This document shows, one piece after another, positions 2,429 through 60,539 of a DNA stretch of 64,000 bases. The DNA is from Ranitomeya imitator (lineage: Eukaryota). The stretch lies in the NCBI RefSeq assembly GCF_032444005.1, contig NC_091285.1, positions 38,378,001 through 38,442,000 on the forward strand, read 5' to 3'. Within the stretch, counting starts at the first letter, position 1, and every line of letters starts with the position of its first letter. Made by a program: the position numbers and the translations under genes. Below the pieces are notes generated by a model. It made no database searches, was not told the origin of the DNA, and saw only the letters and a list, made by a program, of their open reading frames with translations.

Positions 2429-3027
2429 TGTCACGTCCTCCTGGGAGATCTGGGGTTAGAAGATCACTACGTATTGTGAATCGCAGATCTTCCATTTAGC
2501 CTGTGTGTTTGTGTCCGGTCAGAAACTTGCAGCTAAATTTTCAGCTGCTTCTGATCTGGTCATGACCTCTCCCTATAAAACCTGGCCTAACCCTCTCTGC
2601 CTTGCCAGTGAAAGCTTTGCTTCCTAGCTTCTTTATCTGTGCTGAATAGGAGCTACTACTCTTGCTGCTGGAGATTGTTGCATGCTGTTTTCGGGTGCAT
2701 GCTTTCGTCATTGTGCTATTCCAATTGGTTGGCACATTCCTATCATTCTCTATATTCCTCTTTACCTTTGGTGAGTGTTTGTATATTTGTTGCTTTCTGT
2801 TATCCCTGTTTTGTCTTTGCGTCTTGTTTCCTTTTATTTCTGTCCAATGCCTCATGGGGTGGGGGACGGGATAGATCAGGGTTTAACAGGAGCATAGTAA
2901 GGTCAGAGACTCAGGCTTCTCTACCTTCAAGAGTACACTTGGGACAGGGATAGTCAGGGTCCCAGTTCCAGGGACAGTTTGAGGCCCCACTTCCTTACCG
3001 AAGACCGTCACTGCGGGACATGTGACC
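2429..3027 (+). mobile_element. Probable solo LTR (degenerate)
   Basis: Starts TGTCACG, has TATAAAA near 2574 and ends near TGTGAC. No clean TSD found. Confidence 0.4.
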
Positions 3028-3215
3028 ACAACTACAGGAATTCTGTGGGACAGTAAGGGGGTTGGATGCATGTTACAATAGATCCTAAATATCATCTTCC
3101 AATGTGTTCAATAATCCCCAGTTGCACCAAGAAAGTTGGTTGTTGGGTGATGACGTAAAAAATGTTACTCGAAAGCTATGATTTCAACCTCAAAAAGTTC
3201 TGTATTGTTTTGCAG

Positions 3216-3697
3216 ACCCATCAGCCCCACCCAAACCCATCATTGAGGCATCAGTGAAGTCAATACGAGCAGGAGAGAATTTTATTGTCACCTGTACCGT
3301 TTTAGGAGAACTGGAAATCAGTGTGGAGTTCACCTGGGAATATCCTGGGCAACAGGTAAAAGATAAGTGACCTGGACATGTTGGAAATTGTACTAATGTA
3401 ATCATGATTAGACCTTTAAAGCCATAGTCATAAAAACGACCATCGTCATCGATTCACGACTCTTTCTTTCTATAGATTGGCCGACCTCCTTATGTCCGGG
3501 AGAACACGTCACAGACAAGACGTGGAGGAACATTAATGCAGGAGTTTCAAAGTATTTTGTATATTGATGAATCTCGTGCTGTGGATGATGGCACTTATAC
3601 CTGTACAGCACAAAACTTACAGGGGAGCACGTCCGTAACCACAAGGGTTACCGTCCTCCCACCAACGTCTACAACCCGAGTAAGAAACCAAGGATGA
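3216..3697 (+). CDS. pdgfrl: PDGFRL-like secreted Ig-domain protein, last two coding exons (3216-3355, 3476-3697); 5' exons not identified in window
   Basis: AG/GT-bounded in-phase exons give DPSAPPKPIIEASVKSIRAGENFIVTCTVLGELEISVEFTWEYPGQQ|IGRPPYVRENT...DDGTYTCTAQNLQGSTSVTTRVTVLPPTSTTRVRNQG*. This is an I-set Ig domain with the CTVLGE..V.FTW..PGQ and Y.CTAQNLQG.T motifs of PDGFRL. The stop comes with no TM or kinase domain. It may be a paralogue rather than the orthologue. Confidence 0.8.
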
Positions 3698-6382: not shown

Positions 6383-6523
6383 NNNNNNNNNNNNNNNNNN
6401 NNNNNNNNNNNNNNNNNNNNNNNNNNNNNNNNNNNNNNNNNNNNNNNNNNNNNNNNNNNNNNNNNNNNNNNNNNNNNNNNNNNNNNNNNNNNNNNNNNNN
6501 NNNNNNNNNNNNNNNNNNNNNNN
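6383..6523. other. Assembly gap (141 N)
   Basis: Run of N. Confidence 1.
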
Positions 6524-22500: not shown

Positions 22501-25500
22501 TTTCTCAGTATGAACGGCTGCGCTGCTACTATGGGAAAAAGCGTAAGTTTAACTGCACATAGTCCATTATAATGCTACATCGACATGGTCCTGATATAGC
22601 AAAGCTGAGTTTGACATGACGGCCGTGGTGTCTGGTATATCTTGCATGGGACTGCAGTGTTGCTTAAACAATTAGGTGTTATCAACGTTTCATGTTAAGG
22701 CCATGCTAGAATGCTAATACAGTTGAATGTGGGGTCCAGTGCAGGCACCAGAGCAGCCATGTGGTCTGCTATTGGCAGCACACCACTGGCTGAGGAAGTG
22801 GGGGCTCTAGGCAAATGGCTAGTCTGCCTTGCCCTAATGCTGGGGGAGGGGCCCTACAGTAGACCATTATCAATAGTTTAGCCAACACTCGAATAGGGAG
22901 CCAAACTGGTTGTTGAGGAGTGTCAATCTGGCTTGTGCAAATTTTTGGGCTTCCAAATATGGTGGTGTGCTGGAGATACACCATTGATGGGATTCTCGTA
23001 AGACACAAGCTCACTTAGCTTCGCACATGCCCCCATGGGATCATCCAGTCTTATGATCTCAATGGTTAACTGGCCTTGGGTCTCAAAACAGAATTATGGC
23101 CAATAATAGTACTGTGCTAAGCTTCCAGCTTTTCACATTACTTGTGTAAGTGCCAACCATCTTTCCAGGTATTGATGACTTCATACATATGAAAGGCTAA
23201 AATTCTTGTCTCGCCCATGATTCTTATTTCCATATTAACCACTTGACTTCCTATGCAGTGACTGCTTATTGCAATGCTGAAAACAAGATGGTGGTTGCCA
23301 TTTCAAAAGACCTGACTGTACCGTCCTTAATTTTGGACTCTGTTTACATTATGGATGTGGACTCTGCCTCCTGCCCAGAGCTGAGAGTGGCCACAACTGC
23401 ATCATTCATTGGGTTCCAGTTGCCCCTCTCCTGTGGAGGTGCAAACCAGGTGAGCAAAAAGTTTACTAGAAGTTCATCCGATCAACTGCAAAAAAGTCAA
23501 GCCTGCCTTGCTCTACCTGCAGCAACTGATACTCCTCTATAACTTGGTACCATTTGGTTTTACAGGTGGCCGAGTCATTGGTATATGAACGCACTTTTGT
23601 GGCAACCAACCGTGTACTCACCTGGCAGAGGGCTTCTATCACTAGAGACAGTAACATGAGGTAGTTAAGTACAACTCTAATCTAATGGATAAGATTTTCT
23701 GTAGACTTTTACTAATATAATCTTTAATACAGGGTGACCGTACGCTGCAACTATGGACATACTGGGGTCATACCTCTGCAGGTTGAAGTTTTGACTCTCC
23801 CACCACCTCTTCCTGTGTCCACCTCTGGTCCTCTTCTTTTGGAAATGAGAATAGCCAAAGGTAAGCATTTTCTATTAATACTTAAACCCATGATATGGTG
23901 TCAAACAATTAATACTACAGAACAAGTGGAGTAGTGCACAGAAGTCTTGCAAAAAATGCCACTTGGTTAGCACAAGGCTTGTCCCAGCTGGTTAATGAAT
24001 GCAAGCCTTGGGTCTGTAGACTGTATGAGTTTTGGCTTCATGACAGATGATGGATCTTACGATCTTATTTTAATGAGACGCAATCACCCATCAATGTCTT
24101 GCAGATCAGCAATATACTTCATACTACACTGAACGAGAGTATCCCATCGAACGAGTCTTAAGGGATCCTGTGCACACAGAAGTTCGGATTCTGCAGAGGA
24201 CTGATCCCAGCCTGGTTCTGGTGTTGAACGACTGTTGGGCCACCAATTCTCCTGTGCCTACTGACGGTCCTCAGTGGCCTATCTTGTCTAACAGGTAGGG
24301 GTTAAACAACTAAGGATAAAATCCTTGTCCTGTTGAGGACTTCCATGATGTAATGCATAGTGTTCTCCCTCCTCAGCTGCCCTTTTCAGGGTGACAACTA
24401 TCTGACGGAGCTGGTTCCTGTAGTCTCTTCACAGAGCATGACTTTTCCAACACACTACAAGCGCTTTATCGTTAACGCATTCACCTTTGTGGATGAAAAC
24501 ACCCAAACTGCTCTTTCTGGACTGGTAAGTGTCTTGCTTGTATATGGTCCACTGCCACACTGGTCTGTAAAGGAAATTGCAAATTCTTGCAAGAATCACA
24601 TGACTGGTCTAATTTCACTTTCCTTCCAGCTAAAGGACACCTTATTGAGCAGCTAGAAGTTCACTGACTCTCCTACTTGGGTGACTTGTAAGGGCGGCAG
24701 ACTTCCAGCCACTGTTACAGTAGGGTTGGTGGGTCCCCTTGGCATTGTCTTAGGCATATGGCAAGTAATGGGGGGGGGGGGTGTACCACTTAAAATCTGC
24801 ACCAATTAAGGAGCTTCATACTGGACACAGTGGTGTGCTTAGCTTTTGAGGGTCTGACCTACTATGACTTCAGGGACTCTCTTGCTGATAAGACTTTAAT
24901 CAAGATATAGATACATATATAAAAACCATGTTGTATACATACTACAGGTTATTTGCCCACTCTTGTTTTGATATTGGGCCTTGTCTACTACTCCAGCAGG
25001 AAGTGTCAAATGGGGCTTAAAAAAATCTTCTGCTAAATCCCAAGTCAAACAATCCTCAACATAATTAGAAGAGACTTGCCATGCAGTAGAATATAGTAGG
25101 TCTGAGCTGTAACAAACCTCAGTTGGTAACTTCTCTGTGGTCCTACAGGTGTTCTTTCACTGCAGTGCGTCAGTGTGTGTACCATCTGCCACAGAATCGT
25201 GCTCCATCAACTGTGCCAGAAGACAAAGTAGGTGGAAACTGAGTTACACTCAACTACTGTCTTGGTATTGATGGGCCTCATCTTCTGGAATCTGTTATTT
25301 GATGTTCTGCACATCTTGTGGGCCTAACTTTCAGACTTGTCTTGCAGAAAGAATGGTTGACACATGGGGGTCTGATCTTCAAACAGTGACTTCCAATGGG
25401 CCGATTGTGTTCAACACTAAACTAACAGAAATGGAGAAGTTGCTCCATGAGGAGGAAGGTAAGGAGCTACATACCACGTGATGCAATAGATTAGCCTAAC

Positions 25501-26026
25501 AACTATGTAAAGGGTATTGCCTGACATGTGTATCGGTTAGACATTGGTAACGTGTCAACCTCCCTGTACTCCAACTCGAAAAGACTACCTTCATTGTGAA
25601 GGAACCTAGCAACTTTAGAACTTTAGATGCTAAGGCCCCAACTCATAAAGTTGTCTATGCCAAAAACTTGGCTTTAAATGTCCCAAATATTTGACTTTTT
25701 TTCTCTCAGAGATTAAAACCATTGTATCATGGATATCAGAAGATAGTTGAGGTTGCCAAAGACCAGCCTTGGCTTTAAAAACCAATCCTAGGTCTCAATA
25801 AATTAGGAGACTCTTATTAGTCCAGGTTGCATCATCTATAGGCTGTCTGCTCTCAAATAATCAATGTATAATATTTCCTCTCATAGGCCGTCTTGATTCT
25901 GAAGTTCTCATGGCTTGGCTACAAGCTGGAGCAGCTGCTGTTGGTATACTCCTGTCTGTGTATCTGCTGGGGATTTATCTGTATAAAAGGCACAATAAAT
26001 GTGTTGTGTCCACATTGAATCCTTGA
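19562..26026 (+). CDS. zp4: Zona pellucida glycoprotein 4 (ZPB)-like, copy A; 12 exons, 545 aa
   Basis: Exons 19562-19745, 21129-21250, 21627-21723, 22390-22542, 23259-23449, 23566-23660, 23733-23860, 24105-24294, 24377-24524, 25149-25227, 25348-25458, 25887-26026. All are GT-AG and phase-consistent, totalling 1638 nt with no stops. Domains: signal peptide, 4-Cys ZP-N1 (NDSTCGTW), trefoil (6 Cys, GCCF), ZP-N/ZP-C ([34 protein letters not shown]), furin [17 protein letters not shown]-terminal TM. Confidence 0.93.
20452..20734. mobile_element. Harbinger MITE in ZP4-A intron 1
   Basis: TIRs GGGTATGTTTCCACGTTCAGG and CCTGAACGTGTACACATACCC, with TTA/TAA flanks. Confidence 0.75.
21399..21549. mobile_element. 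hAT-type palindromic MITE in ZP4-A intron 2
   Basis: TIRs CAGTGTTCCCCCAACTCCGGTCCT and AGGACCGGAGTTGGGGGACACTG. The 8-bp flanks do not match (degraded TSD). Confidence 0.7.
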
Positions 26027-30857: not shown

Positions 30858-31180
30858 TTGCGCAAAAATGTAACTTTTAGCATTTGAAGCAGCTAAGGAG
30901 GAGCCGTGGTGGGATAGAGCAGGCCGGAGCGAGCCGTCCCCTCCCCCCCACAGACGGCGTACGTGCAGGCCGTCATGACAGGGGTTTGGAGAGGGAGGAT
31001 AGAAGGGGTGGGAACATGTTTTAGGGGAGGAGGATAGTATGCATTGGGGGGGTTTATAGGGCTAGGTAGGGGGTGGGGTTGGCCAGTTCCCACTCTGGAG
31101 GCCAATAGTGAGTTCCCGCCTGCCCGCCCTGTTTTTACCGTTTTTCTCTTTTGGAGCATTTTTTGCAGCTAAGTTGCTCC

Positions 31181-31781
31181 CGATGGGGAGGGCTTTTTCA
31201 AATAGGCTGGCCGGTGCGAGCATAAGGCTGATTTGGAGGTGTGGGACAGTTTTTTGGCACGGTACAATGGCCGTTCATTGTTGATGGAGGACGTAGTCGG
31301 CAACGCTGATTTGGACTTGTTTACTGATGCTTCAGGCGGCGTTGGTTTTGGCGCCTTTTTTGGTGGCAGGTGGTGTGCTACTAGGTGGCCGGACGAGTGG
31401 TTCGCGTCCGGGTTGGTGAAGAACGTCACTTTGTTGGAAATCTTTCCTATCCTGGTTGCAGTCTACTTGTGGAAGGAGGATTTGCGCAATCTGAGGGTTC
31501 GTTTTAATTGTGACAATATGGCGGTTGTGTGTGTCATAAACGGTTTGACGGCCTCTTCTCCTCCGGTTATCAGGGTTCTCCGTCAGTTGGTGTTGTTCTG
31601 CATGTCTATCAATGTGTACATTACGGCGACTCATGTACCCGGAGTGGAGAATTCTGTGGCTGACTCTTTGTCTCGATTTCAGTGGGAACGGTTTCGGTCT
31701 CTGGCCCCCGACGCGGAGGAGACGGGTCTGGACTGCCTGCCTGAGCTTTGGAATGTGGTATCCAGGCTGCAGGACCTTTGA
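31181..31781 (+). pseudogene. Ngaro pol C-terminus (RNase H domain); RT deleted
   Basis: LFTDASGGVGFGAFFGGRW...LLEIFPILVA...FNCDNMAVV...HVPGVENSVADSLSRFQW (DIRS-type RNase H D-E-D-D motifs). Confidence 0.85.
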
Positions 31782-32633
31782 TTCGCGCGTCTTTGGTGCC
31801 CAGCACGTGGTCGGCGTATCGGTCGGTATGGTGTGATTGGGAATCTTGGATGGCGTCCTGTGGGGCTACTAACGGGGGCGAGGATCAACTGGGCGCTTTG
31901 TTGTTGTGGTTAAGACGCGGCGCGGAAGAAGGGTGGTCGGCTTCAAAGGTTGATAGAGTTCGGGCGGCTTTGGCTTTCGGTTTTCAGCTTCGAGGATTGC
32001 AGGATTTGACGAAGTTGTTTTTGGTACAGCAGGCGATAAAAGGTTTTCGTAGAAAGGCGGGGCGAGGTGATCTTCGGCGCCCAGTCTCTTTTGGTGTGTT
32101 GGAGCAGGTGGGCATGCGTTTGAGGGACATTTGTTTATCCAATTTTGAGATGGCTCTCTTTTGTTTAGCCTTTTCCCTGGCGTTTTTTGGGGCCTTAAGG
32201 GTTGGGGAGTTGGTGTCTCCCATCACGTTTAGGCGAGGGGGGCTCTGTGGTGCTTATTGGGAGTTGTTTACATTTCTGGATACGTCGGTCTAAGACTGAC
32301 CAGGTGGGAAAAGGTAAACGGGTTGAGTTGGGCTCGGTCAGTGGTTCGCTCATGTGCCCTGTTCGTTGTTTTCAGGCGTTTACTAGCCTGCGGCCGGTTT
32401 TGGATGGTCCTTTGTTGTGTCACGAGGATGGTTCCTTTTTATCCAAATTTCAGTTTGTTGCTGTTTTTCGAAAAGCTTTGTCGGAGTTGGGTTTGGACGC
32501 TTCTCGTTTTGCGTCGCACTCATTTCGTATTGGGGCCGCGACTGAAGCGGCTCTGGGGGGATTGACCCCTGAAGTGATTCAGAGGATAGGGAGATGGGAG
32601 TCTGGGCATTACTAGAGCTTTGTTAGACCATGA
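31748..32633 (+). pseudogene. Tyrosine recombinase, frameshifted and prematurely stopped
   Basis: AFFGALRVGELV in the first frame, then SHSFRIGAAT and IQRIGRWES in the second. A TAG at 32613-32615 precedes SFVRP, where the catalytic Tyr would be expected. Confidence 0.85.
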
Positions 32634-33417
32634 AGGCCTTGCGTTTGTTTTTATCGTACGCCTGTATTTTGTCGTGTCATTGTTTTGGATTTTAAGTTGT
32701 TTGTATTTTCTAGGTCGAACCCTCATGTTGGTTTGGATCATCGGCCACTCTTTCATCTATTGGGGCGCAAGGCGAGCGGATGTTCGGCGGGACGGACGTC
32801 AACTCGGTTTTTCAAGGGACGTGGCCGTGATCTGGTGGCTGGGTTTTAGGAGTTTGTGTTGGAGTGGCGTTATGCAAGAAGTGCACAAGGGTATTAGGTT
32901 GGACAGAACTCCTGACATTTTAGTTTTTCACGTGGGGGGCAACGATTTGGGGGTTCGCCCTTGCCGCGAATTGATCCGGGATATAAAACACGATCTGCTG
33001 AGGCTGTGGGTATCTTTCCGGGATTTGTTAGTTGTGTGGTCAGATATCGTCCCGAGGAGGTGCTGGCGACACGCCAGATCTGTGGAAAGGATCGACAAAG
33101 CTAGAATTAAGGTGAATTGGGCTATATCTAGTTTTGTCGTTAGAAACGGTGGTCTGTTCATCCGTCATTTTGAATTGGAAAAAGGGGGAGATGAATTTCT
33201 CCTGGGAGATGGTGTTCATTTGAATGCGGTGGGCATCAATTTGTGGGCTCTCGGTTTGCAGAGCGGTATTGAAAGGGCCATAGCGGTCAAGTTTGGGGGG
33301 CCTCAGGTACTTAAGGTGTTCAAGTACCTCTCGTTGTGGCGGTGGGAGGGGTCCTTGGAGTTGGTACTAAATTGGCCTGGGGGATCCGTCGGGATACGGA
33401 TTCTTCAGTTGGTGTAA
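32620..33417 (+). CDS. SGNH/GDSL-type hydrolase ORF of the Ngaro element (real start probably near 32724)
   Basis: Block I IGHSF, block III HVGGND, block V GDGVHLN. No internal stops; the ORF runs into repeat B1. Confidence 0.8.
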   Translation: MLDHEGLAFVFIVRLYFVVSLFWILSCLYFLGRTLMLVWIIGHSFIYWGARRADVRRDGRQLGFSRDVAVIWWLGFRSLCWSGVMQEVHKGIRLDRTPDILVFHVGGNDLGVRPCRELIRDIKHDLLRLWVSFRDLLVVWSDIVPRRCWRHARSVERIDKARIKVNWAISSFVVRNGGLFIRHFELEKGGDEFLLGDGVHLNAVGINLWALGLQSGIERAIAVKFGGPQVLKVFKYLSLWRWEGSLELVLNWPGGSVGIRILQLV

Positions 33418-35136
33418 AGTTGGTTTCGGGTCTGGTGGTTTGAGGGGATCTTGGCAACGGTGGGCCAGATTCCCAGGTGTTAGGTGGACAATGGTAGCCC
33501 TTCGGGGTATTTTGGTGCTCCCGAGCCAGGTGGTTATGGCTGGGAGTAAATTATGGTCTGGTTTTTCTGTCCACTCTATATATTATGTTTTACCACCAGT
33601 TTGGAGCTTCAAGGACCTCCCCACGTTACTTTACCGTTAATGTTTGTATGTTTATAATAAAGGCCACTGTCGCCAATTATTATCCAAGTTTTGAATCCTG
33701 TCTTTATTGGGGTTTATTTGGGTACTTGGGAGGGGGCCTGAAGATGGGAGGATCCAACTAAGCACTCGAACAATACCAATGTCAAGAGCAGGCCGGAGCG
33801 AGCCGTCCCCTCCCCCCCACAGACGGCGTACGTGCAGGCCGTCATGACAGGGGTTTGGAGAGGGAGGATAGAAGGGGTGGGAACATGTTTTAGGGGAGGG
33901 GGATAGTATGCATTAGGGGGGGTTTATAGGGTTAGGTAGGGGGTGGGGTTGGCCAGTTCTCGCTCTGGAGGCAAATAGTGAGTTCCCGCACGCCCGCCCG
34001 CCCTGTTTTTTCCGTTTTTCTCTTTTGGAGTGTTTTTTTGCGGCTAAGTTGCTCCGGGTCATGGTGGCTGGTAGCGGTGGGAGGGGTCCTTGGAGTTGGT
34101 ACTAAATTGGCCTGGGGGATCCATCGGGATACGGATTCTTCAGTTGGTATAAAGTTGGTTTCGGGTCAGGTGGTTTGGGGGGATCTTGGCAACGGTGGGC
34201 CGGATTCCCAGGTGTTAGGTGGACAATGGTAGCCCTTAGGGGTATTTTGGTGCTCCCGAGCCAGGTGGTTGCGGCTGGGAGTAAATTATGGTCTGGTTTT
34301 TCTGTCCACTCTATATATTATGTTTTACCACCAGTTTGGAGCTTCAAGGACCTCCCCACGTTACTTTACCGTTAATGTTTGTATGTTTATAATAAAGGCC
34401 ACTGTGGCCAATTATTATCCAAGTTTTGAATCCTGTCTTTATTGGGGTTTATTTGGGTACCTGGGAGGGGGCCTGAAGATGGGAGGATCCGACTAAGCTA
34501 TTGAACAATACCAATGTCAGGGGCATGGCTATGCTCACTCATCAAATTCAGTGCTGGCATTTTGGACTCCAGAAATGGTATTCCAGTCTCTAACTGGAGT
34601 GACATTTCTGGCGAAACTCACAGAGGCGTACACCACTAATAAGATGCGCCAAAAAGTGAGTTTTTCCTTTTCTAAAGCTTTTTGCGTTCCAGGAGTGTTT
34701 TCGAGAGTTTATTTTCTGAAGTATTTTGCAGCCCCTTGGACCATGCCTAGTTTGGAGAGGTGCTCAATTTTTTTCCAAACAAAATTTTTCCCAAATCTGA
34801 AGCAGAATAAAAAAACGCAGAAGGAATTAAACATGTGGACAACAAGGCCATTTTGCAATAAAAATTAATTTAAGTTTCTTTCAAGCATATTTTTGACTGA
34901 TTTTTCAGAAGCTTCTTGAATCTGGTCAAGAAAAAAAAAAAAAAAAAAAAAACTCCAAAAACTTAATCTGCTTATACCGTTAGAGAGGAGGAAGGAAGGA
35001 TTGGCATGGGAAAAGCTACTGGGAGCAAACTGAAAAGCATTATGTAGCTAGGAGACTCCAGAGGTTCCCTGGGGTTTCAGAATAGTCACTCCGTACAATG
35101 TGTAGGATGACCGAGAAAAATTAGGGAAGGAAACTA

Positions 35137-39207: not shown

Positions 39208-39849
39208 ATGGGTTGGAGTAAGCAGCACCTGGGCCTGGCCATGTTGGTTTGGTGCTGTAGTTTCCAATGTTTAGTCTCTGGCCTCAGTCGGTTTTTGGAT
39301 GAAGTTTCCAGTCTGCAGTGTCGGCCTAGTTCTATGAGGTTTTCTATTCCCACCATACATGAGGAGTTCAATTCTGCTTTGTTCGTGTTGGGTGAGTATA
39401 ATTTATTTTATCCTTTGATTTAGTATTCTTGTAGTATGGGGGTTATTGGTCCTGATTCATCCATGATGTCAAATCACAAAACTCAAGATTATAATTTTAT
39501 GCTAAGAAAGTATACCTCACATATAGACTTTTAGGTTTGCTGTGTATGTAGTGTGTTTTTGTTTTTTTTGTTTTTTTTTTTCTTGGAACCCCAGATGCAA
39601 AATATCAGACTCCCCAAAGAGGCACATCTAGCTTCATCAGGTGCTTACCCTGCATACAGGCTATAGATCTATGTAGGGAAATATATGTAGAGATATATTC
39701 AATTGAGAAGCAGTTATGCCCTATGAGCCTGTATGCAGAGAAAGCCCCTGATGAAGCCAGATGTCACTAAAGCTTTACTCACATTTGGCTTCATCAGGGG
39801 CTTTCTTTACGCAAAGGCTTGTAGAGCAAAACTCCTTCCTAATTGAAAA

Positions 39850-39914
<65 letters not shown>

Positions 39915-42900
39915 CAATTGTATAAGTAGTATTGTGCTGAGCATGTATGTACGGAAAGCGCCTGATGAAGCTAGACGAGCTCTTTATTCACATTTGGCTT
40001 TGTCAGGTGCTTTCTCTACATACAGGCTCGTAGAGCTAAGCTACTTTCCAATTATGTCATCTGTATAATGTGGTGATACTTCACTCTTGAACAGCTATTT
40101 CTCCTTGCAGCTGACCTGCTATATCCTAAATGCTGCAATACCAGATCCAGCCTTTAATCAAGAGGGGCACTGTTTGTAAGCCATGGGGGGTTTTTTGTTC
40201 GTGTGTTTTTTTTTTTTTTGTTTTTTTTTTTGTTTTTTTTTTTCATTGGGTCACCCAGTGGTAGACAGTCTTCACTGTGATATGCACTCATACATAGTGA
40301 AAACTGAACCCAAACTCTGTTTAGACAGCATTTCAAAGGTTTGTTACATTAAAAAAAAAAACAGCTTTTAGCTTCTCTCCCTTGGTCCTATCCATAGTTG
40401 GAAATGCAGAACACTTGATGGATGATTATTAATTCAGTAAAAACTTATGGAAGGATATTACCCATATTACAAGCTTTGATGACCAACATGGAGTAACACC
40501 TAATTATGGAAGTTTGTACTTTGTCTTCCAGATTCTAAAGGAAATCCTCAAGATCTGCGCAATGACTCCACTTGTGGATTGTGGGTAGGACAAAATCTAG
40601 ATTCCTCGGTGATCGTCAATGCTGCTTATGATGGCTGCTACGTCAGAGAAGAGGTGAGACTCGTGCTCATAAGCAGATGCTTGGAGGCATTGACTGGCTG
40701 CATTTTGGTCTGTGGTAACCCACATGACTGACTGCCCTTGCTTCACCATTGATAGGATATCCCCCCAAAATGTCTTGTACTCGCCCCCAAAAAATTAACT
40801 AAAATTAAGTTACAATTGTCATTTTAAAGCCAAATAAGTGTGTATATCCATGCTTTATTAAACGGAAGCATGTAACAACTTTTTGGCAGCTGCAGAAAAT
40901 TTGGGGAATGCTTGTAATCATCTAGACTCCAATGCCCAACTGCTTTGCTGTCCCTTCATATAAACTACCAAGCTATGACCACTCATTCAGTGAGTCGCGT
41001 GTCTAAAATTCAATTCAAATGAGCTTTATTGGCAGGACTAAGTACATGTTAGCATTGCCAAAGCATATGGTAAAAATACAGGGATGGGGGAGGGGGGGGC
41101 ATATAGAGGTCCAGGGTACATCAGACTTCTTTTAGAGGATAGGGGATGTTTCCAGGGTGGGGTATAGGAGTCCATGACATATCAGGCTCTTTAGTCGGGG
41201 GATAGGGATTTGTCCAGTGTTGGGGTACGGGAGTCCATGACATATCAGGCTCCTCTTAGTCTGTGGCAGGCACTGACATATTCCGCTGCTACGGCCACTG
41301 AACTTTCCTCTTCCCCCAGTATTATCGGTAGTTTCTCTTCCTCCTCCATGGAGGTGAAGTCTGGGAGGAGATCAGACACTCTTGAAGTGAGTGTCCCTCA
41401 CTGCGGAGTATTTGGGGCACCTCAGCAGGAAGTGGGCCTCATCCTCCACGGCCTCCTGGGGGCACTGCTGGCAGGGTCTGCTCTCTCGGGGCTTGTAGTT
41501 CAGTCAGTGCCGCCCGGATTCGATGAGTAGGCTGTGGGTGCTCAGTCTGTACCGGCTCAGGATCTGTTGATCTTTGGGGTTTTCTAGTTTCTCTAGCTAT
41601 GGGGTCAGTTTCTACTCCCTCTGTAGATTCTGGTATATTGTCAGTTTCTTAGATTTGTTTGTCGTTCCTCCAGATGCTGAGATAATCCTCTTTGACTTTG
41701 TGTATCATCTTCTGGATTTCACCTTTGTCAGGCCATGGAGGTTGATGGCTTGGTCAGACTGGCTTTGGGTACTTTTTCTTGGGAGGCTTCCTGGTGTAGG
41801 AGGGCTTTGTGATGGTAGGAGCTGGGAATGACAGTGCCTTCTTTATTGCGATGTGTAGTGGGAATCTGCCCTGCTCTGCTCGGCAGGCGCTATTTGATGT
41901 GCTCCGATGGACTTGGAGAAATGCATATAAGTGTGATGTATAAATACTTAAAAACAAGGAACGCACGACTATCTGCCTGTATGATAAACTGAGTGATCTA
42001 CACTTCTAATACTTCTGTAACTCTTGTTTTAGCTCGGAGAACATGTGATGACTCTGATCATGGAACGTATAAATAATGGTGAAGTGGAACATGATAAAAA
42101 GGACCTTAAATGTCCTTCATTGCCAGGTAACTCCATGGTTTCTAGATCCATATCTTATATCGTTCCTGTGGCTTAGAACTCTAGTACTGAGCAGATGACC
42201 TCCAGTTCTCTCATGCTTGAGCCACCTTCAATAATTGGCCCCATAAATGTATTAGTATATAGTACCTATACACCACATGCCACCCTAGTGCTTTTCCTGG
42301 CAGTTGCATGGCCATAAAGAATAGTATGACCACTGAGTGGCGTCCATTATGTGTCCAAATGAGGATTAAGGTGGCTTATGGAAGTGCCTTCTCTTGGTAG
42401 ACAGAAGTCCTCCATTACATGACACATGGACTGAGGTCTACCAAAGCAAAAAAACTACTGGGTCACTACAAAAGTTCTCACCAGGCTCTGAGCCATTGTC
42501 TAAAGTCTTATCTTTAAGACTAACCCTAACTTTTAACGTTGAGTGAAAATCATTCCTTGAACCCCCTATATATGCACAGTAGATATGTGCCACAGTAGTC
42601 AAGACTCCAGATGGCAGCTGAAATTGTGGTTTCCATAAGATTATGAAGATGGATATTTCCTTTGTCTTGAGTGCAAACAAGTGGTCTCATGCTTGGCTCG
42701 GTTGGCAATACCATTCCGGGCACCTTGGTGGTTGTAGTTTTGCAGCAGTTAAAGGTAGATGGTTAATGAGACATCTTTCATAGCTTTGGATGCTCCAAGC
42801 CCTAGTGACTGTGCTGCTATCAAGACGACTGACCGTCTACAGTGTGCAAATTCATCTGTGCCTCAGGATGTCTGTAATCGACTAGGATGCTGCTTTTCTC

Positions 42901-45900
42901 CTGGAGCCTTGCCCCAATGTTATTACGGGAACAAATGTAAGTAATAAGAACTAAAATGTTTCTAGCAAAAAATACTTCTGCATCTGTCCCTAAATTGTTG
43001 TAAAGTTGCTAATTTCTAATAAAGGGGTGCAACACCACACAACCTGTGGGGTTTTTTTTTTTTTGACAAACTTCTAAACTCAATCAGTATACAGTGTGTT
43101 CATTTGCACCTTCCAAAATTCATTCCTGGTCTCTTCGTTTACTCCTGTTCCAGTCACTGCCCTATGTACTGATGATGGTCAAGTTCTGATCGTACTTTCT
43201 AAAGAGCTGACTGCACCATCATTGATCTTTGAATCTGCCTTTGTCCATGGTGTGGATTCCTCATCCTGTCCGTCACTGAGAACTTCTAAGAATTCAGCTT
43301 TTCTAGTGTTTCAGTTTCCCCTCTCATGTGGTGGAGGAAGTCGGGTAAGTCTACTGTGAAGTCATCAAATGAATTTCCAAATTCCTAGGTTGGGTCTTGG
43401 CAATTTGACACCAACAGCATAAACTTTAGAAGTCTGTAGCCACTCAACAGTTGGCATATCTTCAACTAGACATGGATGTCACGACTTCTACATTATTTAT
43501 CCATTGGCAGGTCTTGGGTAACTCCATTGTATATGAGAATACAGTGGAAGCCACTAGGGATGTTAGGATATGGAAAGGCTCATCCATCACAAGAGACAGT
43601 ACGATGAGGTAAGATCAAATCTGTAACCTTGACATGAAGATATTTAACTTATGCCATGAAATTGTTGTTGGGACCGGGTCCTGTTCTCGTTGCCATTTTA
43701 ATAGGGGTGTTTAAAATCCCCAGAGTTGTGATATCACTCCGAACAAAAAAATGGGAGACTGAGTCTAGTGTAGGGAAGCGCCTGAAAAGCACAACATGCA
43801 TGGGTGGGTTTTTTTTTTTTTTTTTTTGGTAGGTGCACAAAATAACTTACAATATCTACCTCCTAGGCTGACAGTTCGATGTAGTTATTCCCAGACTGGC
43901 AACCTTCCATTACATGTTGAGGTGCTTACTCTGCCACCACCACTTCCAGTATCCACTACGGGACCTCTGCTGCTGGAGATGAGAATAGCTAAAGGTAACA
44001 AGTGGTCAAAGTGATGTCTAGTATAAAGGTGTGAGGGTCTACTAAAAATGAAGCCAGGCTTCACCTGTCAGTTTCACTTCTTCTGGTCCCTGGCGGTCTA
44101 ATTCCATGTCAAAACTTCATGTACGATTCCTGGCATCAAAGATGCTTGCATGGCACGAGACTACTCAGGCTAGTAGTTGGGCGTAGTAGCCATGTGTAAC
44201 TTATCTTTACTGCCATCTAATAAAGAACCACTAAAGTGGTGGTACTTGAGCAGCATGGGTTTTGGGTAGACGAGTAAGATGTTCTCTAGAAGAGCCATTA
44301 AAGTATGACAAATACTACCATAGTGCTTCACATTGGAGCTTGCCAATGATGTTGTACTTATTAATTGGTGGAGAAAAGTTCAACTTGATGAACCAAGTAG
44401 CATGTCCATCTCCTATAAGACTACTACTCGTTAATCTCTTGGTAGCATGTATAAAACTGACCCATCATGGTTCTACATCTTGCATTTGCTATATTAACTC
44501 TTGGCCTTCTGATCAAATCTTATCTTGTAGATGATGCATATGCAGTATACTTCATGGACAATGAGTATCCAGTAACTAAATTTCTAAGAGATCCAGTTTT
44601 CTTGGAAGTCCGCATTCTGAGAAGAACAGATCCAAGCCTGGTCCTAATGTTGGATGACTGCTGGGCCACGTCTACTTCAGATCCCACACAAGAAGTCCAG
44701 TGGCCTATACTTGTAGATGGGTAAATCTTAAAATATAACTTCTAGGAGGGAGCAAAAGCTTAATTTTGTATAAAGGGTAACTGAAAGTTTATTTCAGATG
44801 CCCCTTTCCTGGAGATAACTACAGGACGAAGCAATACTCGGTTGAAACTCCCTCACAGAGATTGCAGTACCCAACACACTACCAACGTTTCATTGTCAAC
44901 ACCTTCACATTTCTGGATGCAAATGACCAACCTTCAACTGGTGGACTGGTGAATGTCTTTAGCCTTTACTGTAGTAGATGGAATAGAGGTAGTAATATTA
45001 GGAAATGTACTGAAAGACCTAAATGCCCAAAATGACAGCAATGTGGGGGAGCTTGGAGGGGAATGTCAAAACATGGGTGTAAAACTTAGTATGTCCATAA
45101 CATGCATTGGACCTAAACAAATGCCATGATTATGGTCTTAATTGCCTTTTCTACTATGCATCCCAGGTGTACTTCCACTGCAGTGCCGCAGTTTGTGTAG
45201 CAGATGGGACACAATCTTGTAGAACCTCATGCCCACAAAGAAAAAGTAAGGGTTTTACTTTTAGGACTTCTAATTATTGACTGGCCAAGCATAACTGTTT
45301 TCAATGTTGTCTAACTGCAGGACGAGACATTGAGGAAAGTGGTGAGAAGATCACAGTGAGCAAAGGTCCAGTTCACTTCATTGACCCTAAAATGCCATCA
45401 CAGACAAAGGGTGACATGTCTACTAGCATGCAAGGTATGTTGCCCCTTACCGGTTCATCTGGTAGATGTCCTGATGGAGAAACATGGGTGTTGCCTAAAC
45501 CACCCACTTCTGTGTTCGGTTGAGCAAAGGGTTCTAGAATGCTACTTTTTTTTTTTTTTTTTTTTTTGGGACTTTGTCTACCAGCAGGAGACATCTGGGA
45601 CTATGATACACAGAATGAAACGGCTGTACCAGATTTCATAGGTGCTGAAAAGGAAGATCATGTGGATGGGGACTTAATTGAAATAACCAAGAATTTCCCC
45701 AGAAGAGTCAAAGGTAATGATGGCAACACATGGACTTACTTTCTGACTTTGGGCTGTCCATTTATTTACTTATTTATTTTTCCAGACTTTGAATCGGATG
45801 ACTCCACCCTGGTGTGGCTCAAAGCGGTGGCTGTAGGAGGAGGGATCTTTACTTTAACGATGGCAGTACTTGGTGTCTGGCGGTGCCAAAAAAGTCAGAG

Positions 45901-45928
45901 GCCCACAATGTATTCTGTAAAAATATGA
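39208..45928 (+). CDS. zp4: Zona pellucida glycoprotein 4 (ZPB)-like, copy B; 12 core exons (548 aa) plus a candidate extra exon (591 aa)
   Basis: Exons 39208-39391, 40532-40653, 42033-42126, 42784-42936, 43154-43344, 43511-43608, 43867-43994, 44531-44720, 44798-44948, 45167-45245, 45321-45434, [45585-45713], 45786-45928. All are GT-AG with the same phases as copy A and no stops. Trefoil, ZP module, furin RKRR, EHP TVSKGPVHF and TM are all present. Confidence 0.92.
41006..41925 (-). mobile_element. Degenerate 3' fragment of a CR1/L2-group LINE in ZP4-B intron 2
   Basis: Minus-strand translation gives LQVHRSTSNSACRAEQGRFPL and RYRLSTHSLLIESGRH*...CQQCPQEAVEDEAHFLLRCPKY (C-terminal zinc-knuckle), followed by a TTTGAA/ATTGA-type tail. 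Confidence 0.75.
45585..45713 (+). CDS. Candidate extra symmetric exon of ZP4-B (43 codons)
   Basis: T-rich tract, tandem CAG-CAG acceptor and AAG|GTAATG donor. The exon is 129 nt, phase 1/1, with no stop, and encodes AGDIWDYDTQNETAVPDFIGAEKEDHVDGDLIEITKNFPRRVK. Confidence 0.6.
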
Positions 45929-45986
45929 ATAAAGTAACATCCTCCATAAATACGTGTGATATATTCATTAAATGGCATCATAGAGA

Positions 45987-48482
45987 ATGTTAAACATGGT
46001 GTGGAAGGGTACTTATGTAAAAGTAATAAAACTACTAACAGAAAGCATGGAAAGTCTACTTCTAAAGCAGATAGATGAAGCTGCAACCCATAATGAGGTC
46101 CTGGTTATGGGGGACTTTAACTACCCGGATATTAACTGGGAAACAGAAACCTGTGAAACCCATAAAGGCAACAGGTTTCTGCTAATAACCAAGAAAAATT
46201 ATCTTTCACAATTGGTGCAGAATCCAACCAGAGGAGCAGCACTTTTAGACCTAATACTATCTAATAGACCTGACAGAATAACAAATCTGCAGGTGGTTGG
46301 GCATTTAGGAAATAGCGACCACAATATTGTGCAGTTTCACCTGTCTTTCACTAGGGGGACTTGTCAGGGAGTCACAAAAACATTGAACTTTAGGAAGGCA
46401 AAGTTTGAACAGCTTAGAGATGCCCTTAATCTGGTAGACTGGGACAATATCCTCAGAAATGAGAATACAGATAATAAATGGAAAATGTTTAAGAACATCC
46501 TAAATAGGCAGTGTAAGCGGTTTATACCTTGTGGGAATAAAAGGACTAGAAATAGGAAAAACCCAATGTGGCTAAACAAAGAAGTAAGACAGGCAATTAA
46601 CAGTAAAAAGAAAGCATTTGCACTACTAAAGCAGGATGGCACCATTGAAGCTCTAAAAAACTATAGGGAGAAAAATACTTTATCTAAAAAACTAATTAAA
46701 GCTGCCAAAAAGGAAACAGAGAAGCACATTGCTAAGGAGAGTAAAACTAATCCCAAACTGTTCTTCAACTATATCAATAGTAAAAGAATAAAAACTGAAA
46801 ATGTAGGCCCCTTAAAAAATAGTGAGGAAAGAATGGTTGTAGATGACGAGGAAAAAGCTAACATATTAAACACCTTCTTCTCCACGGTATTCACGGTGGA
46901 AAATGAAATGCTAGGTGAAATCCCAAGAAACAATGAAAACCCTATATTAAGGGTCACCAATCTAACCCAAGAAGAGGTGCGAAACCGGCTAAATAAGATT
47001 AAAATAGATAAATCTCCGGGTCCGGATGGCATACACCCACGAGTACTAAGGGAACTAAGTAATGTAATAGATAAACCATTATTTCTTATTTTTAGTGACT
47101 CTATAGCGACAGGGTCTGTTCCGCAGGACTGGCGCATAGCAAATGTGGTGCCAATATTCAAAAAGGGCTCTAAAAGTGAACCTGGAAATTATAGGCCAGT
47201 AAGTCTAACCTCTATTGTTGGTAAAATATTTGAAGGGTTTCTGAGGGATGTTATTCTGGATTATCTCAATGAGAATAACTGTTTAACTCCATATCAGCAT
47301 GGGTTTATGAGAAATCGCTCCTGTCAAACCAATCTAATCAGTTTTTATGAAGAGGTAAGCTATAGACTGGACCACGGTGAGTCATTGGACGTGGTATATC
47401 TCGATCTTTCCAAAGCGTTTGATACCGTGCCGCACAAGAGGTTGGTACACAAAATGAGAATGCTTGGTCTGGGGGAAAATGTGTGTAAATGGGTTAGTAA
47501 CTGGCTTAGTGATAGAAAGCAGAGGGTGGTTATAAATGGTATAGTCTCTAACTGGGTCGCTGTGACCAGTGGGGTACCGCAGGGGTCAGTATTGGGACCT
47601 GTTCTCTTCAACATATTCATTAATGATCTGGTAGAAGGTTTACACAGTAAAATATCGATATTTGCAGATGATACAAAACTATGTAAAGCAGTTAATACAA
47701 GAGAAGATAGTATTCTGCTACAGATGGATCTGGATAAGTTGGAAACTTGGGCTGAAAGGTGGCAGATGAGGTTTAACAATGATAAATGTAAGGTTATACA
47801 CATGGGAAGAGGGAATCAATATCACCATTACACACTGAACGGGAAACCACTGGGTAAATCTGACAGGGAGAAGGACTTGGGGATCCTAGTTAATGATAAA
47901 CTTACCTGGAGCAGCCAGTGCCAGGCAGCAGCTGCCAAGGCAAACAGGATCATGGGGTGCATTAAAAGAGGTCTGGATACACATGATGAGAGCATTATAC
48001 TGCCTCTGTACAAATCCCTAGTTAGACCGCACATGGAGTACTGTGTCCAGTTTTGGGCACCGGTGCTCAGGAAGGATATAATGGAACTAGAGAGAGTACA
48101 AAGGAGGGCAACAAAATTAATAAAGGGGATGGGAGAACTACAATACCCAGATAGATTAGCGAAATTAGGATTATTTAGTCTAGAAAAAAGACGACTGAGG
48201 GGCGATCTAATAACCATGTATAAGTATATAAGGGGACAATACAAATATCTCGCTGAGGATCTGTTTATACCAAGGAAGGTGACGGGCACAAGGGGGCATT
48301 CTTTGCGTCTGGAGGAGAGAAGGTTTTTCCACCAACATAGAAGAGGATTCTTTACTGTTAGGGCAGTGAGAATCTGGAATTGCTTGCCTGAGGAGGTGGT
48401 GATGGCGAACTCAGTCGAGGGGTTCAAGAGAGGCCTGGATGTCTTCCTGGAGCAGAACAATATTGTATCATACAATTATTAG
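45987..48482 (+). CDS. CR1 ORF2 remnant: truncated endonuclease plus intact reverse transcriptase (831-aa open frame beginning in flanking DNA)
   Basis: [80 protein letters not shown]. No stops. Confidence 0.92.
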   Translation: MLNMVWKGTYVKVIKLLTESMESLLLKQIDEAATHNEVLVMGDFNYPDINWETETCETHKGNRFLLITKKNYLSQLVQNPTRGAALLDLILSNRPDRITNLQVVGHLGNSDHNIVQFHLSFTRGTCQGVTKTLNFRKAKFEQLRDALNLVDWDNILRNENTDNKWKMFKNILNRQCKRFIPCGNKRTRNRKNPMWLNKEVRQAINSKKKAFALLKQDGTIEALKNYREKNTLSKKLIKAAKKETEKHIAKESKTNPKLFFNYINSKRIKTENVGPLKNSEERMVVDDEEKANILNTFFSTVFTVENEMLGEIPRNNENPILRVTNLTQEEVRNRLNKIKIDKSPGPDGIHPRVLRELSNVIDKPLFLIFSDSIATGSVPQDWRIANVVPIFKKGSKSEPGNYRPVSLTSIVGKIFEGFLRDVILDYLNENNCLTPYQHGFMRNRSCQTNLISFYEEVSYRLDHGESLDVVYLDLSKAFDTVPHKRLVHKMRMLGLGENVCKWVSNWLSDRKQRVVINGIVSNWVAVTSGVPQGSVLGPVLFNIFINDLVEGLHSKISIFADDTKLCKAVNTREDSILLQMDLDKLETWAERWQMRFNNDKCKVIHMGRGNQYHHYTLNGKPLGKSDREKDLGILVNDKLTWSSQCQAAAAKANRIMGCIKRGLDTHDESIILPLYKSLVRPHMEYCVQFWAPVLRKDIMELERVQRRATKLIKGMGELQYPDRLAKLGLFSLEKRRLRGDLITMYKYIRGQYKYLAEDLFIPRKVTGTRGHSLRLEERRFFHQHRRGFFTVRAVRIWNCLPEEVVMANSVEGFKRGLDVFLEQNNIVSYNY

Positions 48483-57700: not shown

Positions 57701-60539
57701 TAAATCTGCAAGCTAAAAAACAAAACAAAAAAAATTCAGGACTCTCATTCATTTTTCTGGTACTAAACGATCCTTCAGGTTTACTGACAAAACTATACAA
57801 TGTGTGCAGACTCTGAGGGTATGTGTCCACCTTCAGGATGGCCGGCGGTTTAGTCGGAGCGGCAAACGTGCTCCGCCCCCTTCTGGGACACGATTATGCC
57901 AGATGTGTTCATAGTACACATCCGGGATCATCGCACCCAACACATAGGGCCCTGTGTTATACCTTGCGTATACGGACATGCTGCGATCTTAAAAGACGCG
58001 CCGCATGTCCGGAGACGCAGGGACGCCGTGTGCGTGTTACCACGCATAGTGGAGACGGGACTTCATTCAATCCCCTCCACTATGCTGTAACATCTGGACT
58101 CTGCGTGTTTGGCGAAGCGTCAAGCACGCAGCGTTTACTACATGTGGGGTACTTGCCTATCTTCCATGAGGGGTATTTCCTCTACCTAAACTAGATCTGG
58201 TGTTCTACGCCTCAAGTCCAAAAGGACAGCCCTTTCTAAGGTAACCTCCTTGGTACCGGGTTACACTTATTTCTCTCTTCCATCCTAGTTATGGATGCTC
58301 CAAGCGCAAGTGAATGTTCAGCAGTGAGTCAAGCAGACAAGCTTTCTTGTGTGAAGGCCCCAGTGTCTCGAGAAGTTTGCGAGGAAGTTGGGTGCTGTTT
58401 CTCAAATGACTTTACAGTTCCATGTTACTATGGAAAGAAATGTAAGTACGGTATCTCGACCACAAAAATCCTGTTGACAAATTTTACTGTTTTATTCTAA
58501 CATTATGGAGGAATGACACTCAGGCTTTCCTGACCATTCAATAGAGGATGGTATAACTTGCCTTCCTTCGGTTGTCATGATGTTTCATGACTTTCTTGCA
58601 GTGACCACACAGTGCACAAGTGACAATCTCATGACAGTTGCTGTTTCCAAAGATCTTACAAAGCCATCACTGAACTTGTCTTCAGTCCATGTGGTTGGTT
58701 TGGACTCTTCGTCTTGCGCTCGTCTGTCAGTGTCCATGAGTGCATCATTTGCCGTTTTCCAGTTCCCTTTATCCTGTGTTGGATTTCATCAGGTAAGGAC
58801 AAGTAGATGGGAAGGTGCACACAAATATTTGGCCACACCAAGGGTGCACCAAGTGCCTGGACACTCCTTTTAAAGGATACTGAGACCAGATTTGTTTTGC
58901 TATCTTGAGTAGGGGAATGTATAGAAGTGTTAAACATAAGTCTAGACGTTGGGTGCCTTAAGGTAATATGGCTGTGCTGCAATGTCTCAACCTGTAGACA
59001 AGTGCTGCAGCAATGGTAAGAGCAGTCAGCCATGTATCTACAAATCTTCACAAATTATTTGGCTGACCCTATAACATTTCCTATAGGCCTCAGATATAAA
59101 TTACTTCACAGCATCAAACTAGACCCGGTATGATGTAACTACTAAATATCTAATGTAGGTAGTTGAAGGACCGCTGGTCTATGAGAGCACTATTGAAGCT
59201 GTAAGAAATACCATCTCCTGGCAAGGATCCACAATTACAAGGGACAGCACGATGCGGTAAGGAGTCAAACTTGTCAGACTAAACTTGATTTCTGTCCTGA
59301 TTTATAACAATGTTGTCATATTTCCAGGGTGACTGTACGATGCAGCTATTTCCAAACTGACCTTATTCCTTTGCAAGTTGGAGTATCCACTCTACCACCA
59401 CCACTTCCCGTTACTACCTCGGGGCCACTGTTAATGGAGATGAGGATTGCACAAGGTGACTTCATGGAATGACTTCAAATTGCAAAAAAAAAATGGCTAA
59501 ACCTAGTTTCTTAAAATATCTCTGTTCTATTCGCAGATATGTCCTACTCCTCTTACTTCCTGGAGGAGCATTACCCTGTGGTTAAAGTACTCAGAGATCC
59601 AGTCTACTTGGAAGTCCGCCTCTTGCATAGAACCGATCCCAATCTTGTCCTAGTGTTAAACGACTGCTGGGCCACTAACTCTGCAGACTCCACGCTCCTT
59701 CCTCAATGGCCTATCCTATTGAATAGGTGGCTGATCAGTTACAAATTAAATGCCCACTATGGGTTTATGCATCTGACTAACGTAAGTCTACTTACAGATG
59801 CCCCTTCGATGGTGACAACTACATTTCCCAGAGTGTACCTGTTGGAGGTCCTACGCAAAGCCTGCCTTTCCCAAATCACTATAAACGTTTTGTAGTGAAG
59901 ACCTTTACATTTGTGGATCAAGGGGCCCAAACTGCTCTTGAAGGATTGGTAAATATACTTCAAATTCATCACTTTTCTATGCAAAACCTGATCTTGTATT
60001 GGCCATCAAGCTCTGTTATCTCCACTCCAGATCTACTTCCACTGTAGTGCTTCTGTCTGTGTCCCATCTGCCATGGACAACTGTGTGACTTCATGTTCCT
60101 CAAGAAAGAGTAAGCTTGCTTCATCTAAACATAAGCTCTTGCCACCTTGTAACGTCGTCTTCTACACTAAATGTACATAGAAATAATGCTGAGACTTCTT
60201 TTCTAGGACGTATGGCTGAAGATGTTGAACCAGAACCTTTAGCAAACGTGGTGACTTCAGATGGACCAGTTGAGTTCCTCCCAATTGAGACTGAGGCCTT
60301 AAATCTAAAAGGTAATTGTACAATGTATGGGTTGATCATGAGAATCTTGTGATTAAATACCGGTAAATATAATTATTTTTTTGTTCTCCTCTTCAGGTCA
60401 CACTTACTCTAAATATTCAAAGTTGGATGTTGTCCGAGCTGTTACTGTTGGAGGAGTAGTTATGTCAGTGTTTGTGGTGTTTTTAGGTGTTTGGTTTCAT
60501 TGTAGGACACAAAGTAAGAAACACGAACTAAATGCTTAA
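54729..60539 (+). CDS. zp4: Zona pellucida glycoprotein 4 (ZPB)-like, copy C; 12 exons, 543 aa
   Basis: Exons 54729-54906, 56919-57040, 57487-57580, 58289-58441, 58602-58792, 59159-59256, 59328-59455, 59537-59726, 59798-59948, 60031-60109, 60207-60311, 60397-60539. All are GT-AG with the same phases, totalling 1632 nt with no stops. Trefoil, ZP module, furin RKRR, EHP VTSDGPVEF and TM are all present. Confidence 0.92.
55145..55480. mobile_element. Harbinger MITE in ZP4-C intron 1
   Basis: TIRs GGCTATGTGCACACGTT and AACGTGTGCACACAGCC with TAA TSD on both sides. Confidence 0.82.
56156..56411. repeat. AT-rich fold-back (about 255 bp), probably a MITE core, in ZP4-C intron 1
   Basis: GAAGACACAAAAGCGCAC...AACAGTAAATAAGCAAGTGCTAGTCAAAAAA is mirrored by TTTTTTGACTAGCACTTGCTTATTTACTGTT...GTGCGCTTTTGTCTTC. 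Confidence 0.8.
57817..58157. mobile_element. Degenerate Harbinger-type MITE in ZP4-C intron 3
   Basis: Left TIR GGGTATGTGTCCAC resembles the 20452 family. The right end is degraded. Confidence 0.5.

Follow-up and report, generated by a model that had tools for sequence, protein, structure and literature searches.

Proteins built around a zona pellucida (ZP) module are made as precursors in which an external hydrophobic patch (EHP) forms part of the propeptide that blocks polymerisation, and the protease-dependent release of this patch, a process that depends on membrane anchoring, is required for incorporation (PMC7737619). For ZP3 and uromodulin, the portion of that source considered here gives the order cleavage site, EHP strand, membrane anchor, and describes no conserved glycosylated acidic module between EHP and anchor. 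We have analysed a stretch of 64,000 nucleotides (nt) from Ranitomeya imitator (the window; NC_091285.1, positions 38,378,001 to 38,442,000), which carries three tandem ZP4-like genes on its + strand: A (~19.6-26.0 kb), B (Table 1) and C (~56.9-60.5 kb). Gene B keeps the propeptide order of ZP3 and uromodulin and has an acidic, sequon-bearing segment between EHP and anchor, encoded by an additional exon at 45585-45713. We consider it very likely that this is a genuine coding exon that the neobatrachian ZP4-B paralogue normally includes, and comparison of sequences shows it to be an ancient lineage-specific addition that is neither recent nor private to this copy.

Gene B was searched with single exons of the window, or with stored public proteins and parts of them. 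The 591-amino-acid (aa) R. imitator 'unnamed protein product' CAJ0967329.1 (P0152) threads onto the gene residue for residue in 13 coding segments, with its residues 502-544 mapping to 45585-45713, and an orthologous exon is found in five other frog genomes; the thirteenth exon that an earlier note had proposed from the letters of this DNA is therefore real. Single-exon Pfam searches identify the ZP-N and ZP-C halves of the ZP module (PF00100, E = 1.9e-17; PF23344, E = 3.5e-4) and, upstream of it, a trefoil (P-type) domain (PF00088, E = 4.6e-10, exon 42759-42941); PF23344 scored 21.2 bits on a single exon, which is under its gathering score, and the precomputed domains of the whole of CAJ0967329.1 are PF22821, PF23344, PF00088 and PF00100. 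The RKRR furin site (residues 463-466) spans the exon 10/11 junction (junction check PQRK/RRDIE, the slash here and below marking the exon boundary). It is followed by the EHP, GPVHF(I), in which P480 is invariant and G479 and F483 are invariant or nearly so among 60 ZP4 proteins, and then by a C-terminal membrane helix, placed at residues 551-580 by a hydrophobic window together with a helix in the AlphaFold2 (AF2) model, an order that is the one expected of a ZP4. The best 120 relatives of gene B are all named ZP4 or ZP4-like, and in a tree rooted on turtle and bird ZP4 the gene falls in the anuran ZP4 clade; ZP1 sequences were left out of this tree, and the assignment to ZP4 as opposed to ZP1 follows database names. 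A search of a representative library with one ZP-C exon led to the ZP4 of Engystomops (P0008), whose C-terminus aligns to 45590-45925 with a gap of exactly the size of the 72-nt intron that follows the extra exon, and word searches with this Engystomops protein led on to CAJ0967329.1.

The extra exon lies within the 351-nt interval between exon 11 and the last exon of gene B. Exon 11 ends at 45434 (AAG/GTATGT) with one base left over (phase 1), and 45585-45713 contains no stop in the phase that this sets. Of the residues of the encoded peptide, A-GDIWDYDTQNETAVPDFIGAEKEDHVDGDLIEITKNFPRRVK, 11 are acidic and 5 basic, and it has a single NET sequon; the donor at 45713/45714 reads AAG/GTAATG, and next to the tandem acceptor GAG/45591 provides a third in-frame acceptor, which is used by no gene model. 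What the earlier note had read directly from the DNA, namely a 129-nt stop-free phase-1/1 exon with its T tract, its CAG-CAG(-GAG) acceptor, its AAG/GTAATG donor and its NET sequon, holds in every respect. We note that the open frame alone is no evidence for an exon, since shuffled introns often give one: 56% of mononucleotide-shuffled 351-nt introns hold an in-phase, stop-free AG..GT segment of 90-250 nt, and an open run of at least 87 codons lies upstream of 4.6% of random positions in the window. It is conservation that carries the case. No family was matched in a Pfam search of the extra-exon peptide and of the read-through open reading frame, and blastn found no paralogous DNA of the extra exon elsewhere in the 64-kb window; a tblastx self-comparison of the window was used solely for mapping the paralogous exons of A, B and C.

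A hidden Markov model (HMM) of the extra-exon peptide finds it at i-E-values between 1e-28 and 1e-10. The matches listed are 31 protein entries of the B clade, counting isoforms, and represent 19 species; among the 286 ZP4-family proteins fetched the peptide is found in no other protein. The matches come from Hyloidea (Ranitomeya, Dendrobates, Phyllobates, Anomaloglossus, Bufo, Hyla, Dendropsophus, Rhinoderma, Engystomops and Leptodactylus), Myobatrachoidea (Pseudophryne and Mixophyes) and Ranoidea (Rana, Aquarana, Nanorana, Mantella and Hyperolius), and the motifs kept in the peptide are the N-x-T sequon, [DG]F[IV]GAE, DG.L and P-x-[RG]-V-K. Orthologous loci were fetched and each public protein was threaded on its own DNA, the junctions being checked as the junction codon plus four residues on either side, public proteins against their own loci. 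In all six genomes threaded, that is, R. imitator and the five other frogs, the segment forms an exon of its own, bounded by AG/GT sites and in phase 1/1. Its length is 129 nt in the dendrobatids (R. imitator, R. variabilis and D. tinctorius) and in Bufo gargarizans; the exon is shorter in Rana temporaria (114 nt) and in Mixophyes fleayi (69 nt). Conservation in orthologues, which the earlier note had named as a check on its proposal, is thus found, with the exon kept in frame; between dendrobatids and Bufo there are zero indels in the extra exon, compared with 17-61 gapped positions in the flanking introns. In the same comparison the ratio of nonsynonymous to synonymous differences per site (pN/pS) is 0.19-0.21 for the extra exon, a value that comes from small counts (~25 substitutions), as against 0.50-0.59 for exon 11 and 0.66-0.79 for the last exon. 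The extra exon is accordingly under purifying selection, the signature of a constrained coding exon, and because frame, splice sites and motifs are kept without indels and with a low pN/pS, a pattern that annotation pipelines cannot make, we read it as coding. It could be argued that a non-coding stretch, open by chance, has merely been spread through homology-based annotation, and the frequency of open segments in the shuffled introns is in keeping with such an account; however, in frog families belonging to three neobatrachian superfamilies the exon has retained its frame, its length class, its splice sites, its sequon and its motifs, with no indels and a pN/pS of ~0.2 while the flanking introns decay. 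This makes such an account hardly credible, and conservation effectively refutes it.

The relationships of the three copies bear on when the exon arose. We built the tree on the region upstream of the furin site, which thereby left out the insert, and without fused multi-gene 'ZP4' models. B-type proteins form a clade of 18 rows, confined to neobatrachians, with a Shimodaira-Hasegawa-like approximate likelihood ratio test (SH-aLRT) value of 99; copy A falls in a second neobatrachian clade, which also holds the cDNA-cloned ZPB of the toad Rhinella arenarum (this ZPB thus groups with A and not with B), and copy C falls in a third. In copy A exon 11 (25348-25458) joins the last exon (from 25887) directly, as does exon 11 of copy C (60207-60311) its own last exon (from 60397), and a six-frame scan with the exon HMM found no relic of the extra exon in intron 11 of A or C, nor elsewhere in the window. 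The exon is likewise absent from Xenopus, Bombina, Ascaphus, salamanders, caecilians, turtles and a bird. If the B clade and the pelobatoid long-linker genes discussed below are set aside, 40-55 aa separate the furin site from the transmembrane (TM) helix in all complete ZP4 models; these come from turtles, a bird, caecilians, salamanders, Xenopus, Hymenochirus, Bombina, Ascaphus and the A and C clades. Complete models of the B clade with the extra exon have 74-104 aa. Since the B clade carries the exon and outgroup ZP4 and copies A and C are without it, parsimony argues for a single old gain: the exon entered the ZP4-B lineage one time, at the latest in the ancestor that Hyloidea, Myobatrachoidea and Ranoidea have in common, on the order of 150 million years ago. 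The earlier note had spoken of a paralogue-specific gain; the absence from A, C and outgroup ZP4 bears this out, but the gain is not recent or private to this gene, being common to the ZP4-B orthologues of the three superfamilies. As a separate matter, we observe that several public 'ZP4' proteins of ~980-1135 aa (P0002, P0001, P0156, P0157 and P0271) join two or three tandem ZP4 genes in one model, examples being found in Pelobates cultripes, Discoglossus and Anomaloglossus (KAM4038344).

The extra exon is already annotated for R. imitator, both in GenBank CAJ0967329.1, which starts it at 45585, and in RefSeq XP_069618057.1 (P0267), which starts it at 45588, the second CAG, so that across the junction the two models read '...STSMQAGDIW...' and '...STSMQGDIW...', respectively; both starts that the tandem acceptor had been expected to offer therefore appear in public models. 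RefSeq X1/X2 pairs in R. variabilis (591 and 590 aa) and Engystomops (473/472 aa and 581/580 aa) differ by the alanine of the first CAG alone. The NAGNAG acceptor thus seems to give two products one alanine apart, its usage being known from gene models. An alternative is a regulated cassette, in which skipped and included mRNAs at meaningful levels give ZP4-B precursors with short and long tethers. The exon is indeed symmetric (phase 1/1) and a multiple of 3 in six genomes, so that skipping keeps the frame, and for Mixophyes fleayi, where the exon has 69 nt, RefSeq lists one isoform with it and one without, X1 of 571 aa and X2 of 548 aa, whose difference is exactly the 23-aa segment. Nevertheless, no skip isoform is present in the annotated clusters of R. 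imitator, R. variabilis, D. tinctorius, Bufo, Hyla, Rhinoderma, Engystomops and Rana, in which isoform pairs differ by one residue; moreover, the splice sites are strong (T22 tract, GTAATG donor) and the peptide is under stronger purifying selection than the neighbouring constitutive exons, all of which leads us to regard regulated skipping as unlikely. Retention of the 72-nt intron, which the earlier note had placed beside skipping and inclusion as a third in-frame outcome, does keep the frame in the R. imitator sequence, as the other two do, but the open intron is not conserved: in R. variabilis its counterpart has 74 nt, in D. tinctorius it has 96 nt and contains a stop, and in Bufo it has 133 nt and contains stops. 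Its being open and in frame is a coincidence of R. imitator.

Several points weigh against our view that the exon is normally included and matters to the protein. Inclusion in R. imitator is drawn from gene models together with conservation, the models of one species can serve as seeds for those of its relatives, and a look through a word-indexed protein collection for short transcript-derived fragments of the B C-terminus found none. The segment is also dispensable in some lineages, because a recent Pseudophryne duplicate within the B clade (P0162, ~82% identical to P0161) lacks it and it is shortened to 69 nt, with loss of the sequon, in Mixophyes fleayi (L006 10457-10525; P0277, P0278); in the intron of P0162 the exon HMM finds at most 'MDFIGAG', a weak match with E = 4. 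The AF2 model of the whole B protein has a mean predicted local distance difference test (pLDDT) score of 60, falling to ~30 over residues 461-559, EHP included, and the call of disorder for the extra segment that might be taken from so poor a model is weak. Any functional role of the segment is putative.

The order of elements in the precursor is ZP-C cysteines, RKRR, EHP (GPVHF), a variable linker, the extra segment and the membrane helix. The extra segment thus sits in the C-terminal propeptide, beyond furin site and EHP but ahead of the membrane helix (the earlier note, too, had put it between EHP and anchor), and roughly doubles the distance from cleavage site to membrane, from ~45-55 to ~75-105 aa. 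It should leave with the propeptide after cleavage at RKRR and be absent from the mature egg envelope. Because the segment lies downstream of an intact RKRR and EHP, an action on the precursor, and not on the filament, is the more natural expectation: it might serve the precursor as a glycosylated, negatively charged spacer or handle. Such a spacer could alter trafficking, how readily the processing protease reaches its site or when the EHP is released, and altered timing of release might in turn alter the incorporation of the B subunit relative to paralogues A and C.

A different role was suggested by the basic end of the peptide. According to this suggestion, PRRVK is a second proprotein-convertase site, at which a cut would free the EHP-bound precursor from the membrane and yield a secreted, non-polymerising form. 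The site lies just outside the membrane, and dendrobatids, Bufo, Hyla, Leptodactylus, Nanorana and Rana have R-R or K-R before the V-K. However, RRVK does not match the furin consensus, R-x-[KR]-R. What is conserved is the pattern P-x-[RG]-V-K, and not the dibasic pair itself: Rhinoderma and Dendropsophus have KG, Engystomops has SR, Pseudophryne IR, Mantella RG and Mixophyes TR (PKGVK, PSRVK, PIRVK, PRGVK and PTRV(E)). The case for the second cleavage site put forward in the earlier note is therefore weak, and we think a convertase role for this motif very unlikely.

As to where the exon came from, it might be a tandem duplicate of exon 11 that brought with it a degenerate second EHP-like strand (PDFIGAE compared with GPVHFID), competing with the EHP or backing it up. 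The two exons share their phase and are of similar size (114 and 129 nt), hhalign places DFIGAEK on HFIDPKM, and the exon HMM has its weakest matches in the EHP regions of further ZP4 proteins. But those matches have E-values of 50-80, the hhalign alignment has a probability of 0.2% and P = 0.26, which is not significant, and AF2 predicts no strand in the extra segment. An origin by duplication of exon 11 is thus unsupported (P = 0.26), and we judge a second EHP-like strand to be highly improbable. The coordinates of the features discussed here are collected in Table 1.

Table 1. Features of gene B, of its tandem paralogues and of the pelobatoid genes compared with it (window coordinates unless a locus is named)
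Feature	Coordinates	Strand	Remarks
ZP4-like gene B	39208..45928	+	13 coding exons, start to stop codon; basis: CAJ0967329.1 threading, Pfam on single exons
Exon 11 of B	45321..45434	+	completes RKRR and encodes EHP (GPVHFI); phase 1/1; 114 nt
T22 polypyrimidine tract	45546..45567	+	upstream of extra-exon acceptor
Tandem CAG-CAG (NAGNAG) acceptor	45582..45587	+	exon start 45585 (+Ala) or 45588
Extra exon, 12th of 13 coding exons	45585..45713	+	129 nt, phase 1/1; acidic 43-aa segment with NET sequon
72-nt intron	45714..45785	+	in frame; stop-free in this species only
Last exon of B	45786..45928	+	membrane helix, short cytoplasmic tail, TGA; AATAAA 45928-45933 overlaps stop
Intron 11 of copy A	25459..25886	+	no extra-exon counterpart
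Intron 11 of copy C	60312..60396	+	85 nt; no extra-exon counterpart
Pelobatoid long exon 11	Spea bombifrons L002 7740-8201; Pelobates fuscus L007 13132-13536		405-462-nt extension of exon 11; long acidic linker between EHP and membrane

We made several further observations at this locus. At 45194-45213, in exon 10 of gene B, a 10-bp micro-inversion lies between the two arms of a 5-bp inverted repeat, TGTGT/ACACA: R. imitator has TGTGT-AGCAGATGGG-ACACA where D. tinctorius has TGTGT-CCCATCTGCT-ACACA, the exact reverse complement, and R. variabilis is as D. tinctorius with one change. The inversion is in frame, changes the near-invariant ZP-C motif C-V-P-S-A-T to C-V-A-D-G-T, and is present in both public R. 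imitator proteins. At 45926-45933 the stop codon of B overlaps the polyadenylation signal (TGAATAAA), an arrangement that R. variabilis, D. tinctorius, Bufo and Mixophyes share; in Rana the sequence is TAAATAAA. Just 3' of gene B, from ~46060-46200 onward on the + strand, the raw sequence resembles the endonuclease part of a long interspersed nuclear element ('...VMGDFNYPDINWETETCETHKGNRFLL...'). Elsewhere in the window, an element at 30916-34519 has internal split repeats (in element coordinates, 1-265 and 2870-3140, 94%; 2421-2875 and 3156-3604, 96-97%), the regions at 14-18 kb and 30-34 kb show strong and opposite GC skew, and 6383-6523 consists of 141 N (an assembly gap or masked sequence).

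A literature search of incomplete coverage found no description of the extra exon or of the three neobatrachian ZP4 paralogue groups, and a paper on ZP gene evolution (PMC6262864) contains nothing on the extra exon or on neobatrachian ZP4 paralogues. The exon is present in public annotation and yet apparently undescribed in papers. Neobatrachians, with three tandem ZP4 paralogues of which one has an insert of ~43 aa, glycosylated and acidic, in the linker between EHP and membrane, offer a natural comparison, and the short or lost variants of Mixophyes and Pseudophryne together with the long ones of pelobatoids are ready-made constructs with which to vary linker length and charge, the relevant readouts being secretion, cleavage and incorporation.

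We close by setting gene B beside the systems most like it. Its CAG/CAG acceptor is an ordinary NAGNAG tandem acceptor, with both sites annotated and a difference of one residue. Canonical tetrapod ZP4/ZPB proteins (Xenopus zp4, P0186 and P0187; Rhinella arenarum ZPB, Q27HF5, P0208; turtle and bird) have the same domains as B, namely an N-terminal ZP1/ZP4 Ig-like (ZP-N-type) domain, trefoil, ZP-N, ZP-C, furin site, EHP and one membrane helix, and the same layout of exons 1-11 and of the last exon; they differ from B in the 40-55 aa that separate furin site and helix and in giving no match to the extra-exon HMM. The neobatrachian ZP4-B orthologues (RefSeq 'zona pellucida sperm-binding protein 4-like') carry the extra exon in the corresponding place and in the same phase; sequon and motifs recur in it, in several together with the NAGNAG acceptor. 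They differ only in length, from 114 nt in Rana to 69 nt without the sequon in Mixophyes and none in one Pseudophryne duplicate.

The closest parallel outside Neobatrachia is one pelobatoid ZP4 paralogue (Spea bombifrons P0183, Pelobates fuscus P0170 and Leptobrachium P0180), which also has a long acidic insert between EHP and membrane helix, giving a distance of 148-169 aa from furin site to TM helix and a linker net charge of -15 to -20. The last exon of these genes resembles that of B. The pelobatoid insert, however, is a 405-462-nt 3' extension of exon 11, whereas the neobatrachian insert is a separate exon, and a related gene in Pelodytes has no insert. The exon HMM gives no match to the pelobatoid long linkers. 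With hhalign, pelobatoid linker and extra exon align at P = 0.036, NGT...GFIAER lying on NET...DFIGAEK; motif shuffles of pelobatoid linkers give P of 0.01-0.09, and in block-motif shuffles only 'DFLGVERL' of Pelobates stands out (P = 0.024). In an approximately unbiased (AU) test, a common clade of the pelobatoid long-linker genes and B has p = 0.08. On these sequence comparisons, homology between the pelobatoid linker and the neobatrachian extra exon is unproven. It is conceivable, though in our estimation doubtful, that the exon 11 extension and the extra exon represent one insertion in the ancestor of Pelobatoidea and Neobatrachia, followed by intron gain or loss in one of the lineages, and that the conserved glycosylated segment actively times EHP shedding and entry into the envelope. 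If this were true, it would point to ordered assembly of the egg envelope in frogs with three ZP4 paralogues.

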